64,000 bases of DNA from Tubulanus polymorphus. Its lineage: Eukaryota > Animalia > Nemertea. The stretch spans positions 9,203,222-9,267,221 of the forward strand of contig NC_134030.1 of the NCBI RefSeq assembly GCF_964204645.1, written 5' to 3'. The notes beneath the pieces were generated by a model, which did no database searches, was not told the DNA's origin, and was given only the letters and a program-made list of their open reading frames with translations. Of the stretch, positions 2 to 42,200 are shown piece after piece; position 1 is the first letter of the stretch, and the number at the start of each line of letters is the position of its first letter. A program made the translations under genes and the position numbers.

Positions 2-1033
2 AGATACACCCCCGATGCGTGCAACGAATATTGGGGCAAGAAGGATTGTCAACAGACTTGCGGACACTGCAGCCGGGGCCTACCTGTTATACCATTTGAT
101 TCGAGCGCGAATGAACCCGGCACCGATGTCGGCATTTTTCCATCGTAAGGAAGAAATTGTTTCTGGTGTCATTTTCTGAAAATTAGGTCACTACCGCACA
201 GTCCTATGAAAATGTATTGTCACTCGCCTTATCGAATGAATATCAATATCATAAAACAATCGTAAAATATTGTCTATATTGTTTTTATATAGACAATACT
301 TTAAGATTCGTGTATGCTTTCGACATTACAGACTTCGTATAGAACTTATAAGTATATTTTGTAGATATGCTATGATTTATCGTTGTAATGTATATACATG
401 TATATTGTTTTCGATTCCACGTTTTCTTTTGTCATTTCAAGCACGAATTATGGAATCCTTTATTCGCGATCACAGTGATGATAAAAGAGCATCCATATTT
501 CAAATAATAAACTTTTGAAAAGCAGATTTCATTCATTCATTCATTCATTCATTCAAATTCAAGTTCAAGTTCATTTATTTCATAGAAAAGTTTGATTTTT
601 TTATAAATGTATATTAAGATGCTGAAATAGATGAATGTTCCGTGACTGTATAATTTTTCTATGAGAGCCAAGCAAAGCCTAAATGCCCGCTAAAGCAAGC
701 CCCCAGGGCCCAGTTGCACAATCGTGACTTAAGTCAAAAAGTGGTCTTAAATCTTAAGGTTGGTCTTAAGTTGTTAGATTGGCTATAGAACTAAGTTGGT
801 CTTAGACTGGTCTTAAGTCTAAGCCATGACTATGCAACTGGCCCCACGATTGAAAGATATATTAGGCTATTTTACAGTGTATTCGATGAGGTCTTTTAGA
901 TTCGTTTTTTCACGATATTTGCAGGTGCGTAGACAACAGTAGAGAATGCTGGCACCTGTTGGCGAATAATCGTTGTCACGAGCCTCATATTATGGGTAGA
1001 TGTCCGCGAAGTTGTGCAGGTTGTGCCGACTGA
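2..1033 (+). CDS. 3' end (last two exons) of a multi-ShKT-domain protein; 5' part lies upstream of the window
   Basis: Exon ..2-144 reads RYTPDACNEYWGKKDCQQTCGHC (ShKT C-terminal CxxTCGxC), then linker SRGLPVIPFDSSANEPGTDVGIFP. Donor TC|gtaagg at 145 (phase 2) matches acceptor tttgcag|G at 924/925. Exon 925-1033 reads CVDNSRECWHLLANNRCHEPHIMGRCPRSCAGCAD*, a complete six-cysteine ShKT pattern. AATAAA at 1091. Confidence 0.85.
529..554. repeat. (TCAT)n microsatellite
   Basis: Tandem TCAT units. Confidence 0.9.
706..845. mobile_element. MITE family A (TIR ggg(c)ccagttgca, internal CTTAAG repeats) in the ShKT intron
   Basis: Inverted termini gggcccagttgca...tgcaactggcccc. Related copies at about 52648-52775, 56375-56525, 56582-56710, 56835-56970 and 60459-60592. 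Confidence 0.8.
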
Positions 1034-2293
1034 TGAAAGTCTTTCGCTGTACGTTCGGGTGGTTGGAACCGAAATACGAATATAATGACAAATAAAGCTG
1101 TATCAAACCACAGCAAAACCTCATTTTTGTCTGTTTATTTTCGCAAGTCGATCGATGTCGGCGATGTCGGTGGATCGAATCATATCGGAAAGTATTTGAA
1201 TAGATGGTTAGAAAAATATATAGATTTCAATACAAAACAGAGAACCATATCTAAAACAGGTTTTGAAAAAGACTCTTTTGAATCGACGAATAATGCATTT
1301 TATGGAAAAACGTGTGAAAATATTCGAAATATATATTCTGTATAGAAATATCATAAACATAATTAAATTCTATCTGGATAAATTACATATTATATGCTTA
1401 TTAGAAAATTATGATAGGAAAATATAATATTATGTAAACTAATTGAAATATGACGTTTTCAGATTAGGGTATGAGGTATGAGTGAGTGAAATAAAAATTG
1501 AATTCATGCCTGCGAAGATTCAATTTTTATTTTATTTTATTCACTCATACTCATACTCATTACTTATTTCAACGCCATTGCTTCTGAAATTATCGCATCT
1601 AAATGATCTAGATATCAAAACTTGTTCGTGTTGCTTATTGTATGTATGGTTTAACAGATGTATGGGTGCGACGACTTAAATTTCGTTATCAACCAGATAT
1701 TACCACCATTTCCCATCATCGCATTGCAATTCGCGCTCTAAGTTGAACTATTCGATCTTAACGTCCTGGCCGTTTGTCTAAGTTCGAGGATGCCACAAGT
1801 GTTTTGAAAGAATGATATCGATTGTATCAGCAGAGATGAGTTCTCACATTTCGACCTAGAAACATCTTCCGTACGCGATTTTACAACAATGCGATTTGAC
1901 ATTGCAAAGTCGTAATGTCATTTGAAGGTCATACAATTAATTATATGAAGCAGGTCAATAACAACATATCCTGTTTTCTTTTTAAGTCCTCATTTTCTGT
2001 CCATCGATTACAGTAATTTTCGGGTATTCCAATTTCTGAGGTTTTGTTTGTTTTTATCTTGTTAAAGTTAAATTTCTTCCAGCGATGAAGCGACGAAAAG
2101 CGTAGTTTTATCGAATGAATCGAAACAAAATAGACGGACGCGAACACTTTGTCAGCTGCGCTTATATTCTAAAAATCAGTCGAATTTATTTCCACCCGAA
2201 CAAAACAACTACATGAATGAGCCTCGTGACCGTTGGGTCTTCACACTAATTATCCATTTATTGTACTGAAGATTTTGGAAATCATTCGTTAAA

Positions 2294-4761
2294 ATGTATT
2301 CGTCGGTGCTGCCAGCAATTCTACTATTTCTCCTCGGTGAGTCTTGACAATTCTTTTTAAAGAACTTTATACAGCTTTTTAACTTAAAAATCGTCTTACT
2401 TAATGAAATGAAATAGAAAAATTCTAAAACATAATGACTAACATTTAGTTATCTCAACTATTTATTACAATCAAGCTTCCGTAGAAATTTCTAATAATTG
2501 TAAATGAATAAGATCAAATTTTCAATTTTTACTAATGATGTCAAAATCAGCAAAATTTTTATCAATCGTAGATGCATTTTCGTCGATAAATATCTCAACA
2601 AAAAGTCAATTCTTTTTATTTTTCGTAAATGGTGTCCTCGGGACGCCTCCGTAATAATAAGATGGATGAAAAAGCAATTATTTTCTTACGTGTGCATTCG
2701 CAAAACTAATAAAAAATGACTTTACTTGTGTGCGAACGTCAACGATGTCAAAACCTCAATCATATCAAAACAGATCAGACGATGATTTCTAGAGAGAGTT
2801 CGAAACTTGACCACTTTTTACTTTTTGATTTTTCAACAAAGATATTTGTTTTTGGATTTGAACAGAGTGGATTTTAAACTTAAACAGAACAGAGTGGGTT
2901 TTTTACTCTATAATCAGTTCTCCGTGTTTGAATGTGGCTTTTCTACTAACCAAACATAGCTTTTCCTTTTAGTTAAGTTTCTATAAACATTATTATCCGG
3001 TGGATGATTCTCATATGTCATCTTACATAGATTCGTCGAACTAATTAAGTGATGTGCATAATGCAAAATCATGTCGTTTTCAAAAAATTATTTTCAAGCT
3101 ATCGCTCAATCGGTGAGAGGACTGAATGATGAAGCTAGATTAATCAAAAGATTGAAAGTAATGTATCCCGATAGGTCGGTGAGACCGGTCGTTAGCTCAA
3201 CCGACAAGCTGATCGTCAAGGTCGGAGCTTATCTTATGAGAATAAACGAATTAGTAAGTTGAAGATTTCAAAATGCTATTCTAAAAATGTACATGTTTTG
3301 CTTCTTCTTTAAGCAATTATCAAACAAACCCCAAAACATCCATGCATCATGGATTCTGTATATTCGTCTATTTTAGAATACCAAGCGTAGTTTATTGTCG
3401 TTGAATGTTTGGATGAGATACGTAAGTATATACAGCAAGAAGCTAGGTCTAGCTGAAGCATAACCGTTTTCAAGGTCATGTACGAACATATAAGTCAATT
3501 ATGCGTATTGTGTAGTCTACAGGACCAAGTTCCACAGTTGTGGGTTGGCGTTAACTCTGAGTTAAAGTTAGTTCATTTTCAAGAGTTAACGCTGAGTTAA
3601 ATCTTAATTCAGAACTGTGGAACTGCACCCAGTATATTCACAAATAGAAATTAGTTAATCACTTTTATACTAAGAAAACCACGCCTAACCCGGACTTGGA
3701 CCCGGACCTATCCCGGACCTAACTCAGACTTTTTACTAACTCGGACAAAATGAAATCATTTTCAGACTTCCTAACATATCTTCCTATCCTTAACTCCTAA
3801 TTCGCCTACCTCGGATTGATTCTGCCGGTCCTAGCTTGTTCGAATTAGGCGAGGTTTACGGTATAGATCTAGTGATGAACATTTACATACGTGTCGTGGA
3901 CGCGTGACAAATGAATTGTCTTTCAGTCGTTGTTATAGCCAGCGATAATACGAATGTCAATATCTCTAATTATCAGGGATGGCATGATAATTTCTTAACA
4001 TGGGATCCAGCACGATTTGGTGGAGTAAAGAATATCCGTTTGCCGATTAAGGATATCTGGGTGCACGACGTTATCCTCTATAACGCGTAAGTATCTAAAA
4101 ATTCTGCAAATTGATGTTCGGTCGTCAGAATACGGCGTAAATTCCGACTAAAACTCAACTAATTTCCTCGTATTCTAAACTGAAACTATGGGGGCGGTTT
4201 TTGTTTTTAGAGGTTACACCAAGAATGGTTTGGGAGGTCAAACGTTGGACACGGCGTCGCTTGCGCTCGTCAGCCATAATGGAGATGTCACGTGGATTCC
4301 ACCCGCTCAATTGAACGCTTTAGTAAATACGACTGTTACGGAAAATGACGAAATAGATTGTGAACTCCGATTTGGGTCATGGACTTATCCCAAAGATTTG
4401 GTAAGTCTTGGTATTATATACCTCCAAAGGTTTGCGTGAACTTCGACACAAAACTTAATACATGTTATTAATTTCAAATTTGATGAAAGCGCTTTGGTTG
4501 ATGAGATTTGATAATTTGCAAATCACTTTTCTCCTTTCTCAGGTGGATGTCGACTTCGTCACAGAAAATCCGGGCATGGAACTAGTGTATTATGCGGAAC
4601 ACCCTAAGTACAAACTGGTGAGCAGCACGGCGGTGAAGGTCGATAAAAAGTACCCCTGTTGCGAAGAGATCTATCCGTATTTGGGCTTCCACCTTAAACT
4701 TAAAGACAGGAAGAATTGCGCATCAGATGAAGATGATGCCGATGACGATGAATTGGAGTAA
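2294..4761 (+). CDS. Secreted acetylcholine-binding-protein-like protein (nAChR alpha-type ligand-binding domain only), copy 1, 253 aa
   Basis: Exons 2294-2336, 3099-3253, 3377-3421, 3977-4086, 4211-4400, 4543-4761; all GT-AG, in phase, 762 nt total. Signal peptide MYSSVLPAILLFLLAIAQSVRG. Motifs: RPV, loop D NVWMRY, WxD..LTWDP..FGG, loop A WVHDVILYN, VTWIPP, loop B FGSWTY, loop C YPCCEEIY. The 45-nt and 110-nt exons are typical of nAChR genes. Stop falls before any M1 helix; AATAAA at 5062. Confidence 0.93.
3522..3630. mobile_element. MITE family B (ccagttccacag TIR, gagttaactc core), present only in AChBP-like copy 1 intron 3
   Basis: Inverted ends caagttccacagtt / aactgtggaactg; absent at the equivalent site in copy 2. 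Related copies at about 16362-16470, 19049-19197, 29903-30003 and 54659-54745. Confidence 0.7.
3669..3864. mobile_element. Old Tc1/mariner-like MITE in intron 3, shared by both AChBP-like copies (copy 2 about 8070-8238)
   Basis: aaaacc(a/t)c(g/a)cctaac...taggcgaggttt termini, repeated tcggac motifs, TA flanks; present in both paralogs. Confidence 0.6.
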
Positions 4762-6209
4762 CTCGTCACCAATTATACGTACACTATAAACACACCATAC
4801 ACTAATTGTATACAGTTGAATATTTGAATTATCCTAAAATTTCTTATGGAATCTTTTAGAATGGCGCATTATTCACTTACGTATAGTAGTCACATAACCC
4901 CGGTTCAATGACAATAGAATTCATTAGAAAATTACCCTGAAACCAGTATTCTTCAGAAAAACCATAGAAGTGCAAGTGAACCTATAACAATAGACGCTGG
5001 GTAGAGCGCGGCGCAAAATAATCTTGCAAAATTACATAGACTACAGATACAACGGACACCTAATAAAAGTTCAACGAAAGATATACATAGTCCTTTAATC
5101 TTTATTCACTGTCGGCTCAATCTCGTCTGGTGGATACATTCATTTCAACAAAGGCATCAAGCGGCGGTTTTGTAGGTTTCAAGAATTCGATCAGTGGAGT
5201 CATAAATACTCTATATGAAGTATTTATATTTCATAGATAATGGTTGTCAGCTTTCCGTAATAATTTTTACATATCCTACCAGTTATTGTTGATTTTGTTG
5301 ATACTCAGAAATAAGGTTAGCCGAAAAAGGAAAAGCACCGTCGTCACCTTGACAACCAATTATTGCAACACTGTACCTGTTGTCAGGGTGACAACAATCA
5401 GCCTCCGAAGCCCCAAGATGTTGTCTTTCCATCAGTACCAAGAAAGTCCGAATGGCTCGCCGATTGAAGAAAATCGATTTTCTAGCCAACTTTTGACAGT
5501 CATCTCCCATACTATCAGGCTGGCCGGCCAGTGCATGGCGTCAAAGAAGCAACGACTGTCGAACGCTGCCAGTACACGTATGTTTGAACGGTCAGGGCGG
5601 ATCCCAGAATTTGTCCAGATTCTAATAGATACGCGGATCAAAAGATTGTTAGAGACGATTGTATTTGCGGTGAGCCCAAGCCCTATGCTCTGTGTCAAAC
5701 ATGTTGAGCAAAGCAAGTGCAGTTCGTCTTGTAGTAACGAACGGTGTTGGACGTGGTTTTCACATTTGCCCCCAAGTCACAGAGAGGACTGTTGTACCCT
5801 GTTGGCCTCCTATTCCTAGAGACAGCTTCGAAAAATAGGTATTCCGCCTAAACGAGTGCAGAAGACGCGTTGTCATTTGAGGGGTTCTGGGTCTACTAAT
5901 TTTCAAAATAACGTCCCCAGAGATACCAAAACATCTCCATTTTTGAAATTTTTTTATCAAAATTAGATCTCTGTTGAATCAATTTTCTGACCATTTTGCC
6001 AGAAAGTCGGGGTCCAGTACTATAAAATGCCTCATGGTGGAGATGAATTTCACGGCATTTTCACTTTGTTTTTGTAAGAACATCTTTAAAAAATGTATCC
6101 AGTTTTGACTTCAAAGCGTTCTTGTTTTTGAGGGACCGACGGTATCCAGTCTTCTTGAACGTCCCCCAGATCCGCACCCGGTAGGGCCGTACAGGCATTT
6201 GTGATAATA

Positions 6210-6310
6210 TAACAGTAGGGAATGTAGGGCATCTTTTGGCGAATATATATTCGTTCTCGCGAGCCTCATATTACGGGTAGATGTCCGCAAAGTTGTGGAG
6301 GTTGCGATGA
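6210..6310 (+). pseudogene. Frameshifted remnant of the terminal ShKT exon, carried by the tandem duplication
   Basis: Aligns to about 935-1035. NSREC / HLLAN / EPHITGRCPQSCGGC are recognisable but separated by indels; the first Cys and the splice acceptor are missing. Similarity continues into the 3' UTR (about 6310-6430 vs 1035-1150). Confidence 0.8.
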
Positions 6311-6953
6311 CAGATGTCGTTCGTTGTACGTTCGGGTCATTGGAACCAAAGGTACGAAAATTTGATAAACGAAAGCTATCAAACCACAGCAAAACATCGT
6401 TTCTATCTTTTTATCTTTGCCAGTCAATCTATATCGGTAATAATGGTTGATCGAATTGAAAAGTGGTGGCACGAATGAATGAATTTGACCTTATTTCCAC
6501 GCCATTACTTATGATGAAATTATCGCATCTAAATGATCGAATGATTCTCGATTATTACAAAAACTAGTGCGTTTTATTGAATGTGGTTTGATATGTAAGG
6601 TGCAATGACTTTAATCCCATTATTAGCTATGAATACTCCCATCATCGCATTGCACTTCGCCCCCGAAGTTGAACTGTTATCGATTGTGGCAGCAGAGATA
6701 AATTCTCACATCTTGACCCAGAAACATCTTCCGTACGCGATTATACAACAATGCAATTTGACATTGCAAAGTCGTAATGTCATTTGAAGGTCATAACGAT
6801 GATAATAAACAAGTCAATGACAACAGATCTTGTTTTCTTTTATCGGTGCTCGTTTTGTATCCATCGAGTACAGGTAGTCTCGTGACCGCGGGGTCATCGC
6901 ACTATTAATCCCAATTTATTGTTCCGAAGATCGTATGGAAATCATTTCTTAAT

Positions 6954-9154
6954 ATGAATTCGTCGGTACTACCAGCTATTTTGCTATCTCTCCTCGGTGA
7001 GTCTAAAAAGTTTTTGAAAAATTATCTACAGCTTTTGAATTTAACAGAAATCGATCTTCTTACCTTATGAAATAGAATAGAAAAATTCTTAAACACAATT
7101 TAGATTACTCAATTCTAAAACAAAGTTTAAATTATTCATTTAGAAAAATTTGTATAATTGCTGATTCCGTATTGGATAGGTTAAAAAGCAATTATTTTCT
7201 TACGTCGGCTTGACTTACTAGTTAGTGCATTCGCGAAACTAAAAAGAACTTCACTTGCATTGACGTCAACGATGTCAAAACCTCCAACACGACATAACAG
7301 ACTGACGATGAGTTCTAGAGAGAGTTCGAAACGCGTCCTCTCTTATTAATTGTAGATTTTTAAATAAAGACTTTTGTTTTTAGATTTGTACAAAGTGGGT
7401 TTCCACTATATAATCTATTCTCCACGTTTGAGTATGGCTCTACTACTCAAACATAACTTTACCAAGTTTCTATAAACATCAGACCCGGTGGTTGATTCGT
7501 ATATCTTTATGTCATCTAGAAAGAATCGTCGAACTAATGAAGAAATGTACATTTACCATTATGTTCGCTTTTTTGATAATTTCAAGCTATCGCCCAAACG
7601 GCGAGAGGACTGAATGATGAAGCTAGATTAATCAAAAGATTGAAATCAGAGTATCCGGATAGGTCGGCAAGGCCGGTCGCTAGCTCTTCCAACAAGGTGG
7701 ATGTCAAGGTCGGAGCTTATCTTTTCAGGATAAACGAATTAGTAAGTTGAAGATTTCAAAAATTTAAAAGTATTTGCTACATTTCTTACATTTCTCCATT
7801 TCCCTATGGAGTGATTACTCCAAGAATAAACCAACCCCCGTCATTATAATCTATGAATCATCTATTCCATATGTGTCTATTTTAGAATACCAAGCGCAAT
7901 TTCTTGTCGTTGAATGTTTGGATGAGATACGTAAGTACAGCAAGAACCCATAGATCTAGCCGTTTTCCAACGTCTTATACGAATATTCAAACGTTTTAAG
8001 TCAATAGTCGTTCTTCGCTGATTAAAGTCTATTGAAAAATATGAATTAGCTTATCACTTATATACGTACTACAGAAAACCTCACCTAACTCGGACATCAT
8101 AACCAACTCAGACTTTTGACTAACTCGGACATTTTTCTGTTTTCTGAGCACATTTCGCTACCCTTAAGTCGGACTTCGTTTACCTCGGACCGATTTTGCC
8201 GGTCCCAATTTATTCGCGTAAGGCGAGCTTTGCTGTATAAATCAGATGGTAAATATCTACGTGTGATGGACGCGTGACAAATGAATTGTCTTGCAGTCGT
8301 TGTTATAGCCAGCGACGAATGGCCATATCATTGATCTCTAATTAACAGGGATGGCAGGATGATTTCTTAAAATGGGATCCAGCACAATTTGGAGGAATGA
8401 AAAATATCCGTTTGCCGATTAAGGATATCTGGACGCATGACGTTATCCTCTTTAACGCGTAAGTATTGAACTCTGTACAAATTGATATTTATGGCGTAAA
8501 TTCCGACTGAAATTGCATGCGAGACACTGTGGTCCAATACAAAGTACTAATTTCTTCGTATTCTAAACTGAAACTAGAGGGCAACGATTTTTGTTTTCAG
8601 AGGTTACACCAGGAACGGTTTGGGAGGTCAGATGTTGGACATGACGGCGCTGGCGCTCGTCACCCATACTGGATATGTCACGTGGATTCCACCCGCTCAA
8701 CTGAACGCGTTGGTAAATACGACCGTTACGGAAAATGACGATATAGATTGCGAACTCCGATTTGGATCATGGACTTACAGCAGAAATTTGGTAAGTACCG
8801 TAATGATATATATATCTTCAATAATCTGCGTGAACTTCGACATAAATTTCAATACACGCAATTCATTTCTTATTTGATGAAAGCGCGAGTTGGTTAATGA
8901 GATTTGATAATTCGCAAATAACTTTTCTCCTTTCTCAGGTGGATGTCAACTTCATCAGCGAAAAACCGGGCATGGAACTGCTGTACTATGTGGAACACCC
9001 GAAGTACAAACTGGTGAGCAGCACGGCGGTGAGGATCGAGAAGAAGTACCCCTGCTGCGAAGAGATCTATCCGTCTTTGGGCTTCCACCTTAAACTTAAA
9101 GACAGAAAAGATGTTAAGCCAGATGATGATGATGATGTTGACGATCAAATGTAG
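6954..9154 (+). CDS. Secreted AChBP-like protein, copy 2, 252 aa
   Basis: Exons 6954-6996, 7587-7741, 7886-7930, 8349-8458, 8601-8790, 8939-9154 (759 nt). Same phases as copy 1 and same exon sizes except the last. Signal MNSSVLPAILLSLLAIAQTARG; loop A WTHDVILFN; FGSWTY; YPCCEEIY; tail KDVKPDDDDDVDDQM*; AATAAA at 9381. Confidence 0.93.
7302..7337 (+). ncRNA. Minimal hammerhead-ribozyme-like motif (Penelope-type) in intron 1 of AChBP-like copy 2
   Basis: CTGACGA-T-GAGTTCT-agag-AGAGTTC-GAAA-CGCG-TC: intact core boxes, 7-bp stem II (two G-U pairs), palindromic ACGCGT stem III, GTC triplet, AATAAA downstream. Stem I pairing is poor. Degenerate counterpart at 2776-2811. Confidence 0.55.
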
Positions 9155-9649
9155 TAACTCGCGGAAATAGTTGAATATTTGAATTATCCTAGGTCTTCTT
9201 ACAGCATCTTTTAGAACGGCACTTAAATTCACTTAATTGTCATATTTACCCGATATTTTATGGTTCAATTAGAATAGGATTCATTAGAAAATCGCACTAA
9301 AATCTACTCTTTAGAAAACTAGACAATGGGTAGGAAGATTTTATCTTATCCGTATAAAACGCCCGGTAGAAACTACACCTAATAAAACTTTAATAGAAAA
9401 ATGAATATATGTAGTTTTTTTTTTCATTCACTGTCGGCGCAATCTCCTCTTGCTGATACATTCAACAAACAAATTGCGACATTTTTTATAGGTTCAGCAC
9501 TCGTTTCAAGAACTAGACATTGTTCAGTGGAGTCAGGCACCGGTCGCCGGTCGCCAGTGGTGTTAAATAGTTCAGTTGTTGGCCCACTGGCCGCCACTCG
9601 GGATATGAAAGTGGTGAAAAACGTTTCCTTGAAATTCTCGCCTTAAAAC

Positions 9650-9770
<121 letters not shown>

Positions 9771-36200: not shown

Positions 36201-39200
36201 ATGGTTTGAGATATAGGCTAGGGGTAATAATACCAACTAATGAAAGCACTGTTGAATATTGTATCATAGTGAAAAAAATTGTTTTACTATTATATACATA
36301 TTATTATTCATTATTATTATCAATTATTATTATTCTTTATTATTCTTATCTATTATTATTATTATTATTGTAGTCATTATCATTATCATTATTTATTATG
36401 ATTATAATCTTAATCATCGTTATTATTATTATCATTACTATGACTACAATCAGGGGCTATCGTGTGTGCGAATAGAAATCAGGATTTAACCGATCCGGAT
36501 TACGCACGTTTAGCGAATAAGGAGCATCTATTCTCTATTCGCAGTAGTTATCATTACTTCACTATCAATAACGACGACGGCCGCGACTCCAGAGATGGAT
36601 TAGCGTCGCTTTCATCGACGGTTCAACGCCATGAAATCTGAACTCCGGAGACTGGAACGAATCCGATACGTAATTCATACGGGCGCAAAAAAGCCAATAC
36701 GTATCGCTACGTCGACGTCGCTCGCCGAAACCGAAATTAACACCGTTACACGTTCCGTATACAATGTCAAACGAACATAAAAAATTAACGACGTCGGCAG
36801 CTAAGCGTTTAGCGATGCGGATTACACGGTTTTCGTTACAGACGAAATCAATGAGACTCTATCGACTATAGCTATGAACACACGCGACTACTGGGAAGAA
36901 GATAACCCGTACTATGATATGCGAAAGATTGAAAAGAGGCGGTGGTGTGCGTGGGTACTAATTCTATGCCAAAGCCCGGCGTACATCGACGAAATCATTG
37001 GCGACAACTAAAAAGGCAGATTTTCGGCATATGGGAAGAACTGGCTGGGTCAGTTGCTTGAATGAGTCAATGTGCACGAGCTTGCGATCTATCTCCAGTT
37101 CCGACAAGTTGTTCATGTTCTACTTTTGAGCAACTGGTTGTACTCAAGATTCACCGATATTCGCGCTACATAATCCACAACGCATGGTGCAACTGACTTA
37201 AACAAAGCAAAATGAGACGTAACTTTGGGATGTCCTCTAGAATATTTGCTAGACAACACATCCCAGTTATCGTCAGAAACTGGTCTGTGAGGGTTGTTGG
37301 AATAGGGTTTCTTACTATCAACTCAACGGGATCCATGCAATGAGCCGCTAAGTCGTGACTGGACCTGTAGACTACGCCCTGCAATATGAAACCCGCACAT
37401 AAATGTTTTAGGCGCCTCATTGTCATTGCTTTCACGCGAAAATACATAGCAAACACGAAAAAAAAGAACATAAAACAAGTTTTTAGGTATAAATTCGGTA
37501 AGCAAACTAGCACGAGATCCATCTAGAAAAAAAGTAACTAAAATAAAACGTGCAAGTTTTTAGTTAACGACCGGTGAGCAAACAAACACGATGCAGAATA
37601 ATACGCAATCCTCGCCTGCCAGGGCTGGAATGGATCATACGCGACTCGGGCAAGCGAGGAGGGCTTTATATAACATCAACAATTGTGAGTCAGTATAAAT
37701 AACAACCATATATTTATGAATGAACAAATTCATTAGAAAATACATCAAGCTACAGATAACAGAGGAATAGATGGATTATAGATAGATAGGGGACAAGATC
37801 GTGAACCCTGACAAATTTCGGTATCAATCCACAGAACGGATGATGATCGTTACTTCATCCGCCGCTTGAAGAGTCGTGATCAATTTGATATTTTCGATAT
37901 GTTCTAAACAGTTGTACGATAAATGCGTGCCGAATAAAGAGATTCGTCGTATTAACGAACATGATGTGTAGAGCTTACATAATAGTTCTTTCTCCCCGCT
38001 TGCCAGGGACTCTTTCCTTTCTGCGAATGTTATGCCACGAATGAATTTCCTCGATGTATTCTCGATGATACAATGATCTGCAGTCCCTTCGCCCAGTTAG
38101 AACGCGAGTAGTGTCCGTAGCTGAATCGAGCTCCGATACGCGCACCCATGCTCCTAACGACAAGGGACTGCTGATCTCCATACATAAGCCGCGATCACAC
38201 GGAGACGATTTGGCCCGAGCCAAATTGGCACGCATCAGGTTCCCAAGTCAAATTTAGGTCGTGCCTAATTAGAGTGCGTGTTCACACTTAAACCACTCAC
38301 TCGATATCAAACATTCCTTAAGCAAAGCGAAGTGAGCGGAACTAGTTAGCATTCACATTCAGCGATTTAACCCGCGCTTAGATTTAGCACGGGCCTGCTT
38401 CGAATTTTTTTACCCGGGTCTAATAGGCACTGGCACCCGCGTGAATGGGCCTAATCTGGCACGGGCATGAAAAAATGTTTGCGCAATCGCGGCTATAAGG
38501 TTGAGAGAAAGATCTTGATTACCGGGTATTCAAAACTGTGACATACACTCTGCGCAAGGACAGAACGCTGGATTTGCTTGATTTGCTCGTTTCATTATGA
38601 ACCCTCTCCACTTCTGCATGATTAAGTTAGGAAACGTCTAAACGTTACCCATTGTTTTACCATTTAGAAGTCAGGTCCATATATTTTTCGCTGGCAAGCG
38701 AGGATTGTATTCGAACAAAAGACCAAACAAAGATTTCCGTTTAAAAATATCATATATATATATATATATAAAATCTGACACCGAATACTTTCGATAGTAT
38801 AGAGAGACAATACTCACAATTTGTTGGGTCTTTAAATGGCGGGGCGTTTTTTCCGGCACATCACGTTTCGACGGCGTTATTTCGATAAAGCTTTGATTTT
38901 CGAACAGCTCTAGAACGTCGGGTTTCTGCGTCTGCGAAGGATCAGAGATTTGGATTTTGTTGATTTCAGAAGAAGGGGCACGGCGGGATGAGGTAAGCGG
39001 GATAGGTGACGACGACCCGTCGAAACTACCGGCGTCGGGGTCGGGCGTCGAATTCTCAACGTCCGCGCGTCGAGGTGAAAAATCGTCACCGTTCTCCCGA
39101 ACCGGACCACGTCTTGCACTTTCACCTTTTACCTGAACCTGAACGAACTGACCGACGGAGGCGAAATTTTCAACTCGAGCGGGCGCCGTCGAATTTTCTG

Positions 39201-42200
39201 AGGCCCGATCCCGAACTACAGCGGGTGCATTTTCATCGCCGGGGAGATCGTGCGAGAAATTATCATTATCAGGCGCGTTAGCGTCATAGGACATAGGGGT
39301 AGTAGCATTAGAATCGACAATAACGATACCGGGTACACCTGATTTTTTATTCAGATTATCATCATCAGCCGCGAAAGCGGGAAAATCATCGCCGCGATTT
39401 CGATCGACGACGCGAACCCCTTCGACATCGTCGACCGAATCGTCGCGCTTATTTTTAGAATCTACGACTATTTCTTCGACGGAAATCAAACTTACGGGAT
39501 GATGCTGATCGTAGTCGCGAGGCGGCGCCACCGCCAACGAGCCGTACGAGCCCGTGATGCATGCGTTCATTATCGGTTCCTCGGTGAACAGCGGCGCTAT
39601 CGCGACGCCGGCTGACGGCGGCTTGGCGCCGCCGTACGTCGCGGCATCGGCTCGCCGGTTACCAAAACTCCGATCGGAGCGCTCCGCCCTATTGCTGCTC
39701 ATGATCGATCCGTTCGTTTTCAATTTGGACGGCGACGGCTGTTCGGTTACGTGGACTGATTGGTGCGTATGATTGCGGGCGGAGGTGGTAGTCGAAACGA
39801 AATCATCGCGTTCGAAATCATCCGCATCACCGGGAGGAGGGCCCGCAACCGAGGACGATACGTTATTCGCAGGTGCAGAAAGGTCGGAATGAAACGGGGT
39901 CGAGGAGGACGGGTGATCCTGGGTAGATCATCGGATAACATAGGGTCGGAGGAGTAGATTGAAGGGAGAAGGAAAAAAAGAAAAAAAGTATATAATATTT
40001 AAGCATGCAGTTATTCAGGAACAACTCAAAAACAATACAGAACAATAGTTGCAACAATGACCTGGAGAGTCTACTACTAATTAATACCATTCTACCACTG
40101 CCTTGGTTTCATTGCAGACAATGCTCCATTGAAATCATAAATTGGACTCAATTTCTAACTTAATATGTTAAGCATTTTGCTGCAATTCAATATTAAGAGT
40201 TGACATACGTGCTATTCTCCAGTCCTTAATCTGCGGTCTATCAAGCCCAATGCACACGACACAGGAAAACACAAAAACATGTGACAGGAATGTGTTTCCA
40301 AGCATTTCCCTGTGTCATGTACGTTTAGGTGAAATGAGAAACATGGTATGGGAAACGATGTTTCCACGATCAAACAGGTTTGATTTTGTGCTTCCATGTT
40401 TTCCTACATTATGCGCAACTTGCCCCACGACTGAACTTGTCATTAGTATTCATCAACTCTCCAGGCAAAACAATATTTCTATTACTGAGGCCAGGAACTC
40501 AATGCTAACCGGTTCAATGGTATTTCACTGTTTTACCGTGGTATCTCAACACCATTTCCACAACACTAGAATCAACTAATTTTCAAATTGAATCAAATTC
40601 TAACTTTAAACAGAAGACATTCAACCACCGCTAGATAAACAACCTACCCTATAAAAGGACTTATCAAATCTTGGTTTACTGAAAATGATGCTATTCAATA
40701 CCCTGTGAAAACCTTATGACAAAAGCTTAAAATTTAATTCTTTTTTATTGATAAACCGTGTCCTGGCCCCAGGATTTTCACTACATTTTACATGACAATA
40801 GCATTAAATTTACAGCCTTCAAGTCCACGATATCTGATTAATCGGTCTCGAGTTAATAGTTATTACTGACTCTTCAAAGGACATGACATTGTTACAACAT
40901 GCTGCTGATTAAACGGTATTCCGATCGAATCGGGTTTAGAATGGGAACTGCCGAGAAATTGATTCGGTACAAACACAAAACGCAAAATGGTATTTTTGAT
41001 TAGAATGCGATAAAATCTCTCGTTATCTCTACAACAACTCTGCTCCGTTGTGTACGAATCCAATTCGCACGCTTTCGACAATCGAAATTCGAATCCGGTT
41101 TTTCGTTTATTGAGATATTTCCGCCGTTGCTATAGTAACAGTCCCTCGACGTGCGGGGAAATGAATTTTATTTTACGAAAATAATGAGGCTTCCATTGTG
41201 CAAACCGAGTCCTTCGAGCTCAAAGCGTCAAATTCGATTGATAGAAATTTCATATCATTTTTAAAGAGACACTATCCGCTCATGTTGTTTATGATGACGA
41301 CGACGTGCAGGCTGTTCATTTAGAGAAATTGAATCTGTGCTGTAAATTGAGATTTACGTACATCAGTGTGTAAAGAACGGCTTTGAAAATCTGTATTCAA
41401 TAGCGGGCCTATGTATTGCAGTAAAACAATAGCAAAATAAACATGAAACATTGTTCTTGCCTATTTCAGGGTGGCCACTTAAAATGACTTGCTTATATTG
41501 TGACATGCACGTCGTTTTCTACTGGACTAGATCAGCTAAAGCCTAGCACACATCGACACTGCGATTGGAGACAACTAGTTGCAAGGCAGTTTTCGGCGCA
41601 TGAAAGGAACTGGCTGGATACGATCAGTTGCTTGAATGTGTCGATGTGAGCGAGCTTACGATTGGTAAGCGTCGATCTATCTCCAGTTCCAGCCAGTTGC
41701 CCATGCTCTACTTTTGAGCAACTGGTTGTACTCAATCGCAGTCATATCCGTCGATGTGCGCGCTCTGGATCTCGACGATCGACACGCGCCATGCAGTTGC
41801 TGCAACTGACCGGTTGTAACTAGATTTCGATGTGCGCGGGGTAATCGTTCGGTAGCAACTAGTTGTCTCCAATCGCAGTGTCGATGTGCGCTAGGCTTAA
41901 GAATCCAATCGATTAACGCAAATCAAATATGTAAGACATAGACGGAACCCGTTTCATTCGCACTCTAGCAATCTCAGCAAATTTGAACCGACATATTCAT
42001 GATTTTGAGCTCTTTTGCTAATTTTTTTAAGAAAAGAAAATTCCCAGATTTTCCCTGATTTCCAGTTAAGTGGCGCCACCCTGTTATTTCATCACCATGA
42101 GCAACGCTGAATGAGGTATCGGCGCTGCTACTGTGGCAAGCGAGGATTCCACAAGGTACGCCGGTAACCGCGCTTCCATTCCTTTTCGCATTTCAATTAA

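Follow-up and report, generated by a model that had tools for sequence, protein, structure and literature searches.

We analysed a stretch of 64,000 nucleotides from the nemertean Tubulanus polymorphus (contig NC_134030.1, positions 9,203,222 to 9,267,221; the whole stretch is called the window, and positions are counted from its first letter). This eukaryotic, intron-containing DNA carries on its + strand two tandem genes for relatives of the acetylcholine-binding proteins (AChBPs), gene 1 at 2294-4761 and gene 2 at approximately 6954-9154. Both encode a signal peptide followed by a ligand-binding domain (LBD; Pfam Neur_chan_LBD) and stop after strand β10, without a membrane domain; six exons bounded by GT-AG sites are read in each copy. 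The pair lies in a tandem duplication, 935-5140 against 6211-9464, with 75-85% identity between the halves, introns included (blastn). In both proteins the first of the two cysteines that define the β6-β7 'Cys-loop' is replaced by valine.

Translation of 4299-4388 (+) gives PPAQLNALVNTTVTENDEIDCELRFGSWTY, and 8689-8778 of gene 2 yields a peptide identical except for D in place of E; both paralogs read WIPPAQLNAL-V-NTTVTEND(E/D)ID-C-ELRFGSWTY. In gene 1 the valine is Val156 (4323-4325, GTA), followed by the N-glycan sequon N157-T-T (4326-4334), and exactly 11 residues separate it from the surviving cysteine, Cys168 (4359-4361, TGT). An earlier sequence-only reading of the window had described this loop, its valine and its spacing in both paralogs, and the translation bears it out, with coordinates within 1-3 bases. 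The valine is the sixth residue past PPA, and the first cysteine stands at the same offset in the Capitella AChBP, human α3, the soluble relative P0012 and the in-genome paralogs described below. Some aligners (HMMER and one MAFFT run) open a two-residue gap in β6 and set Ala under Cys; between WIPP and the surviving cysteine there is no Cys under any alignment. As judged from the aligned sequences, valine occupies the first-Cys column and the Cys-loop disulfide of AChBPs is absent from the pair. Because that signature bond is missing, we class the proteins as AChBP-like, outside the AChBPs in the strict sense. The loop, VNTTVTENDEID, is acidic, contains neither proline nor an FPxD motif and is two residues shorter than that of nicotinic acetylcholine receptors (nAChRs). 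Apart from the NTT in this loop, the mature protein has no N-glycan sequon. The gene 1 product (P0048) has cysteines at 168, 220, 221 and 240, and the mature gene 2 product (P0035) at 186, 238 and 239. The surviving cysteine had been taken to be unpaired in both paralogs; with three cysteines in the mature protein this stands for gene 2, but it is certain for gene 2 alone, because the fourth cysteine of gene 1, Cys240 in the C-terminal tail, offers a potential intramolecular partner.

Exon 1 of gene 1 (2294-2336, +) emerged from a scan for an ATG, a run of hydrophobic residues and a donor in phase 1. It carries the signal peptide MYSSVLPAILLFLL and the first base of an Ala codon ahead of the donor GTGAGT, is kept in gene 2 at 6954-6996, and agrees fully with the N-terminus of RefSeq XP_074653004.1 (P0048). 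This 253-residue protein, isoform X1, matches the six-exon gene 1 model residue for residue, signal peptide MYSSVLPAILLFLLA included. Exon 2 (3099-3253, +) encodes the N-terminal helix and β1 between an AG acceptor and a GT donor, and exon 3 (3377-3421, +), only 45 nt long, encodes NTKRSLLSLNVWMRY with the loop-D Trp. Exon 4 (3977-4086, +) carries the loop-A Tyr and a WxHD motif in which His (4064-4066) takes the place of the family Pro. Exon 5 (4211-4400, +) runs from β5 to β7 and holds Val156, the sequon, Cys168 and the loop-B Trp in FGSWTY; the sequence-only reading had numbered this exon correctly. Exon 6 (4543-4761, +) supplies loop C, Y-P-C-C-E-E-I-Y (Cys220/221, 4657-4662), β10 and the acidic tail with Cys240 (4717-4719) and the stop codon TAA (4759-4761).

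Contigs of four public T. polymorphus runs (X1-X4) were compared with 3090-9089. Two spliced contigs, one in X2 (study P2, 2014) and one in X3 (study P1, 2024; word-depth 592), begin at 3098 and 3104, respectively, and connect exons 2-6 of gene 1 through the joints 3253>3377, 3421>3977, 4086>4211 and 4400>4543, all GT..AG and without differing letters. The 3' untranslated region (4762-5080, +) is reached by X2 contig 9, spanning 4542-5080, and by X3 contig 13, spanning 4542-4984. Gene 1 is thus expressed, with exon 5 spliced in the form read here. The contiguous genomic DNA of X1 agrees with the window, and over exon 5 the DNA contigs and the transcript contigs of both studies have zero differing letters. 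Since the contigs agree letter for letter and GTA differs from TGT and TGC at all three positions, an assembly or sequencing error behind the valine is excluded. Alternative splicing of exon 5 that restores a cysteine, which would have undone the original claim, was looked for and not seen: none of the gene 1 contigs of X2 and X3 shows a splice form bringing in a cysteine, although contigs can drop rare isoforms. Two candidate features of gene 1 were dropped. The acceptor at 3925 or 3937 for the exon after 3253 falls where gene 2 is frameshifted, the real arrangement being the RNA-confirmed 45-nt exon 3377-3421 and the acceptor at 3976. An ATG at 3072 as start lacks a signal peptide and sits in a frame that gene 2 does not keep, with divergence of the transcript contig at 3098.

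Gene 2 follows the same plan. Its candidate exon 1 (6954-6996, +), encoding MNSSVLPAILLSLL, is homologous to exon 1 of gene 1 and has an intact GTGAGT donor. The RefSeq model of gene 2 (P0035) uses a different first exon, 6777-6873, starting MSFEGHNDDNKQ (MSFEGH...), the gene 1 counterpart of which (about 1915-2013) runs into a stop; the annotated N-terminus may be wrong, to judge from this comparison. The remaining exons are exon 2 (7587-7741, +), with AG and GT sites and an intact frame; exon 3 (7886-7930, +), again 45 nt; exon 4 (8349-8458, +), with Phe at the loop-A Tyr position; exon 5 (8601-8790, +), with the valine at 8713-8715, then NTT, and the surviving cysteine at 8749-8751; and exon 6 (8939-9154, +), with the CC of loop C, an acidic tail without Cys and the stop codon TAG. 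Exons 2-4 lie within P0035.

Two repeats accompany the genes. Within intron 3 of gene 1, the 33 bases at 3550-3582 have contig word-depths in the thousands in each of the four runs, with 24,000 in X1, and loose ends are numerous on either side; they belong to a very high-copy repeat. One joint connects 3587 with position 8103, which lies in the corresponding intron of gene 2. Directly downstream of gene 2, 9640-9770 is a long (TA)n microsatellite.

Between gene 1 and gene 2, counted over the individual exons without the two split codons, the proportions of synonymous and non-synonymous differences are pS 0.229 and pN 0.105 (dN/dS 0.41; Fisher p 1e-4), and the introns have p-distances of 0.14-0.21, comparable to pS. 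Within exon 5, the 34-codon core from VTW to WTY has seven synonymous changes and one non-synonymous change, and the other 29 codons have 11 non-synonymous changes (Fisher p 0.0007). The core takes in universally conserved β6/β7 motifs, and the 12-residue loop alone, with one change, is too short for a selection test. Both copies keep all six exons, every GT-AG site and open frames. The last ShKT exon of the upstream gene (935-1180, the gene ending at 1033) came along with the tandem duplication, and its copy at 6211-6456 (+; 78% identity by blastn) has a reading frame broken across two frames. Neutral sequence of equal age has therefore decayed, and the LBD pair has not. By these comparisons the locus is under purifying selection and is not decaying. 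The sequence-only reading had drawn the same conclusion, against decay or sequencing error, from the almost purely synonymous differences in the segment, and both the counts and the letter-perfect contigs agree with it.

Full-length analyses were performed on the database proteins P0048, P0035 and P0001, and exons were searched singly. RefSeq names P0001 'acetylcholine receptor subunit alpha-L1-like isoform X2 [Tubulanus polymorphus]' and P0035, the gene 2 product, 'alpha-like 2'. P0048 matched Pfam PF02931 (Neur_chan_LBD) with an E-value of 7.8e-36 and 124 bits (cut-off 26), residues 27-235 aligning to positions 2-213 of the 216 in the profile, and P0035 matched with 4.3e-37; exon 4 of gene 1 matched the family on its own (E 1.6e-8), as did exon 5. 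The Pfam search of P0048 gave no match to PF02932 (Neur_chan_memb). The N-terminus, MYSSVLPAILLFLLAIAQS, is signal-peptide-like as judged by eye, and the stop codon lies 19 residues past β10, inside the last exon covered by transcript contigs; each protein is thus a signal peptide plus an LBD ending after β10, without M1-M4. The assignment to AChBP-like soluble proteins made from the letters alone is confirmed on all these counts. In a phmmer search of PDB with P0048, the extracellular domains of nAChR α2, α3 and α4 matched with E-values of about 1e-34 to 1e-32, and the Aplysia and Capitella AChBPs with 1e-28 to 1e-23; the best solved relative of exon 5 was the Capitella teleta AChBP (E 1e-7), followed by human α3 and α6. 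An AlphaFold2 monomer model (pLDDT 72) matched the extracellular domains of nAChR α9, α3 and α4 with TM-scores of 0.72-0.77.

The residues of an α-type orthosteric site are present: the loop-A Tyr, loop-B Trp, loop-C Y-x-C-C-x-x-x-Y and loop-D Trp all align with human α2, α3 and α6. Gene 2 has Phe at the loop-A Tyr position and keeps the other aromatic-box positions and the vicinal loop-C Cys-Cys. Where the near-universal motif before loop A is W-x-P-D, gene 1 has W-V-H-D (4058-4069) and gene 2 has W-T-H-D; among the fetched proteins, His at the Pro position was found in 3 of 135 instances of the motif, all three being products of this gene pair. Poly-acidic tails end both proteins, KNCASDEDDADDDELE in gene 1 (4714-4758) and RKDVKPDDDDDVDDQM in gene 2 (9110-9151), with the sequence diverged and the charge kept. 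A soluble LBD from Owenia (P0110) likewise has an acidic end.

We next asked how rare the altered loop is. An exhaustive HMMER search with exon 5 over 1.84 billion representatives returned 34 proteins at E <= 1e-3, the top one being P0001 at 100% identity and the second only 38% identical. A word-based search from P0001 alone gave 15 proteins, mostly fish α3 fragments, and a profile of Tubulanus paralog pieces was used instead. The resulting sample of 165 proteins with 175 loop-B motifs comprises the best 120 of 1451 profile hits together with earlier hits and is not a census; it includes about ten LBD-only proteins of other animals or environmental assemblies. Among these 165 relatives a Cys-loop cysteine is missing only in Tubulanus proteins, the products of four genes. 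In six frames, exon 5 matched the 268-Mb assembly at 14 places, and T. polymorphus has at least seven LBD-only genes at three loci. On contig C4, at 21.87-21.89 Mb, four tandem genes (L003, L004, L006 and L008; RefSeq P0049 and P0050), 82-94% identical to one another, encode LBD-only proteins that are likewise soluble, follow the same exon plan and have a short C-x9-C loop.

The loss of a Cys-loop cysteine is not unique to the window pair within the genome. L005 (P0051; G000:C6:20632744-20635905), 11 Mb away on the window's own contig, encodes a soluble protein reading PPVRLISL-F-GGVDDKNIAL-C, with Phe (TTT) at the first Cys position; its LBD has three cysteines, the second Cys-loop Cys among them. 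RefSeq models this gene with two Ig-like domains ahead of the LBD and an N-terminus that begins inside a domain, which may reflect either a genuine Ig-LBD fusion or a merged gene model. P0067, encoded on another contig and found by the profile search, has transmembrane segments, and both Cys-loop cysteines and FPxD are gone.

Maximum-likelihood (ML) trees were built under LG+C20 PMSF and, with the loop columns removed, under LG+F+G4. The window pair and the C4 cluster are sisters (support 97/95, and 95.6/97 without the loop columns), with P0067 next. The pair's cysteine was therefore lost after its split from the Cys-retaining C4 genes. The Val codon is GTA in both copies of the pair and the corresponding Cys codon TGT in all four sister genes; all three bases differ, pointing to an old, multi-step replacement, the route of which possibly ran through Phe (TTT), the state seen in L005. 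A long branch, of 1.26 substitutions per site, leads to the pair. In both ML trees, which held no reference molluscan AChBP sequences as rows, the pair grouped with the Tubulanus paralogs and then weakly with the soluble LBDs P0058 and P0066, apart from the other soluble group; deep AChBP/receptor splits were likewise not resolved in a published analysis (PMC3423370). L005 fell with α10-like receptors in both trees (99/99 and 94/85), on a long branch. These placements speak for a loss in L005 independent of that in the window pair. The approximately unbiased (AU) test, however, did not reject a clade of L005 and the pair (p 0.69), the constrained tree being 6 log-likelihood units higher, and a GY-x-N-x-GG insertion after loop A is common to L005, the window pair and the C4 genes. 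The sequences would fit two or three independent Cys losses in the T. polymorphus genome.

Compared with known systems, the pair resembles most closely the AChBPs of Lymnaea, Aplysia, Bulinus, Biomphalaria (BgAChBP1/2) and Capitella teleta (4afg) and the ACCBPs of Haliotis and Pinctada. Like these it consists of secreted, LBD-only proteins of ~210-230 residues in mature form, and it has in common with them the aromatic box, the vicinal loop-C Cys-Cys, a variable β6-β7 loop without FPxD and, as in some of them, a sequon in that loop. BgAChBP1 also has Phe at the loop-A position, as in gene 2 (PMC3423370). The described AChBPs and ACCBPs, however, keep the Cys-loop disulfide, whereas the pair has Val for the first Cys, a poly-acidic tail, WxHD for WxPD and a nemertean host. 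The Cys-loop and loop-C disulfides have been called 'strictly conserved' in AChBP, ACCBP and receptor LBDs (Saur et al., 2012; PMC3423370), and AChBP loops surveyed in a spider paper vary in length, with both cysteines always present (PMC4569296). With the 165-relative sample, these accounts speak against the possibility that the altered state is common in AChBP-like families. Of the combination highlighted in the sequence-only reading, a broken Cys-loop accompanied by a sequon, both parts are present, but the sequon has precedent, in N130 inside the Cys-loop of BgAChBP2 (PMC3423370) and in the NVT at that place in P0012. A literature search, incomplete in coverage, found no paper tying Nemertea to an endogenous AChBP and none describing a disulfide-free AChBP.

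The closest comparison within the genome is the C4 cluster (P0049, P0050). It has the six-exon plan, the solubility and the GY-x-N-G-x-GG insertion after loop A in common with the pair and is 42-44% identical to it; it differs in its C-x9-C loop (TGT), in keeping the WxPD Pro and in having no acidic tail. L005/P0051, 36% identical to the pair, likewise keeps the second Cys only and has Ig domains in its RefSeq model. P0067 shows the same kind of loss, yet is membrane-anchored and has lost both cysteines. Animal members of the superfamily without the disulfide are also known among the Cys-less 'Pro-loop' channels of Lophotrochozoa, flatworms and nematodes (PMC4795631), including a schistosome clade (PMC9874803). 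In these mostly lophotrochozoan channels both cysteines are absent and the proline motif is kept, and the need of the disulfide for folding has been discussed (Jaiteh et al., 2016; Johnson et al., 2023). The Pro-loop channels are transmembrane and retain F/YPxD, whereas the pair is soluble, has lost the first Cys alone and has no loop Pro, and thus falls outside that class among the pentameric ligand-gated ion channels. The loss in the pair is secondary, within the cationic nAChR-like clade.

We favour, with a probability of roughly 70%, the reading that the pair belongs to a nemertean-specific clade of secreted α-type LBDs working like AChBPs, in which the loop was remodelled and the disulfide lost while selection continued to act; the function is what we infer. 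The two proteins would be secreted LBD-only relatives of α-type nicotinic receptor subunits, with a short poly-acidic tail replacing M1. Their conserved residues suggest that they most likely form homopentamers, or heteropentamers of both paralogs, and that, in secretions or body fluid, they may act as a buffer or decoy by binding acetylcholine or another nicotinic ligand. The β6-β7 'Cys-loop' would no longer couple to a channel, and with its first cysteine now Val the signature disulfide cannot form. The β6/β7 junction would presumably be held by hydrophobic packing between Val156 and Cys168, whose free thiol would be buried; a possible alternative, for gene 1 alone, is a bond between Cys168 and Cys240 in the tail. 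In nAChRs, the Cys-loop disulfide is poorly accessible.

Several points weigh against this reading. Assembly into pentamers, the identity of the ligand, glycosylation and the redox state of Cys168 are all matters that we infer, and the buried thiol is presumed from general knowledge and not from coordinates. The dN/dS of 0.41 indicates only moderate constraint. In P0001, the AlphaFold2 model is poor over residues 76-94 (loop A / β4-β5), and this weak region together with the WxHD change suggests that the binding site may be altered. As for gene 2, its first exon is uncertain (6954-6996 or 6777-6873), and the four runs contain no spliced transcript contig of it, only unspliced DNA-like contigs (X1, X4).

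The surviving cysteine might instead have been re-used, as a Cys168-Cys240 staple in gene 1 that would hold the acidic tail beneath the pentamer, and in gene 2, with its odd number of cysteines, as a free residue able to cross-link subunits, pentamers or a partner, with differing quaternary states and with rewiring more than once in this nemertean (L005, P0067); we give this a small though appreciable chance. We consider it unlikely that the cysteine is deliberately unpaired and surface-reactive, building higher-order assemblies through inter-subunit, pentamer-to-pentamer or partner disulfides while the N-glycan caps the former membrane face. One Cys is necessarily free or intermolecular in mature gene 2 protein and in the LBD of L005/P0051, each with three, and the NTT, as sole sequon, suits the capping. 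There is also a precedent, in the disulfide-linked dimers given by the single unpaired Cys71 of BgAChBP2 and the 60-mers formed by Biomphalaria AChBP (PMC3423370). The free Cys of that precedent, however, sits at a different, exposed site, and gene 1, the copy seen as transcript, has four cysteines. The position at the start of β7 normally faces β6, inside the base of the sandwich, which also counts against pentamer linking. It is slightly more doubtful that the disulfide has simply moved, Cys168 of gene 1 pairing with the tail Cys240 and stapling the acidic tail under the sandwich, and gene 2 having lost or never gained the partner. The end of β10 adjoins the base of the Cys-loop in pentameric ligand-gated ion channels, the Cys count of gene 1 is even, its tail Cys lies 8 residues past β10, and P0012 has a tail Cys at a similar distance. 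In P0012, however, that cysteine coexists with an intact Cys-loop and so need not pair with the loop; gene 2 retains Cys186 without any tail Cys, and the pLDDT of the tail is low, below 50 at the end.

Two further readings question the genes or the data themselves. If LBD-only copies were drifting to pseudogenes after duplication, the lost Cys would be early decay, and the long branch, the loss of the WxPD Pro, a dN/dS that is not low and the lack of spliced gene 2 RNA would all fit. We regard this as very improbable: the two genes have stayed intact beside a frameshifted ShKT copy, the dN/dS value falls significantly short of 1, two studies contain correctly spliced transcripts of gene 1, and the binding-site aromatics are all kept. 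For gene 1 the relic reading is already largely refuted. The chance that an artefact of assembly, annotation or splicing hides a true mRNA carrying the Cys is practically nil: no support for it was found, DNA and transcript contigs of independent studies agree and their joints flank exon 5 exactly, GTA cannot be reached from TGY by one error, and both paralogs have the same state.

The favoured reading, a selectively maintained AChBP-like pair without the Cys-loop bond, bears on the disulfide after which the animal superfamily is named and for which strict conservation is described in AChBPs and receptor LBDs. The debate over whether a eukaryotic LBD needs it for folding and assembly, or only for channel coupling, still draws on bacterial homologues and uncharacterised Cys-less channels (PMC4795631). 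In principle, bacterial and Cys-less channels already show that the fold can exist without the bond; an α-type LBD that is soluble, expressed and kept by selection without it, with Cys-retaining sisters in the same genome, adds a matched natural pair for testing. The finding also extends AChBP-like proteins to Nemertea. Nemerteans are known for nicotinic toxins, mainly from hoplonemerteans, and a self-protection or decoy role of the pair is therefore a testable idea.

Elsewhere in the window, a 418-codon open frame on the minus strand (38674-39927) would encode a Ser/Pro/Thr-rich product and coincides with the sole GC-rich part of the window (GC content 0.49 at 38-40 kb against ~0.40).

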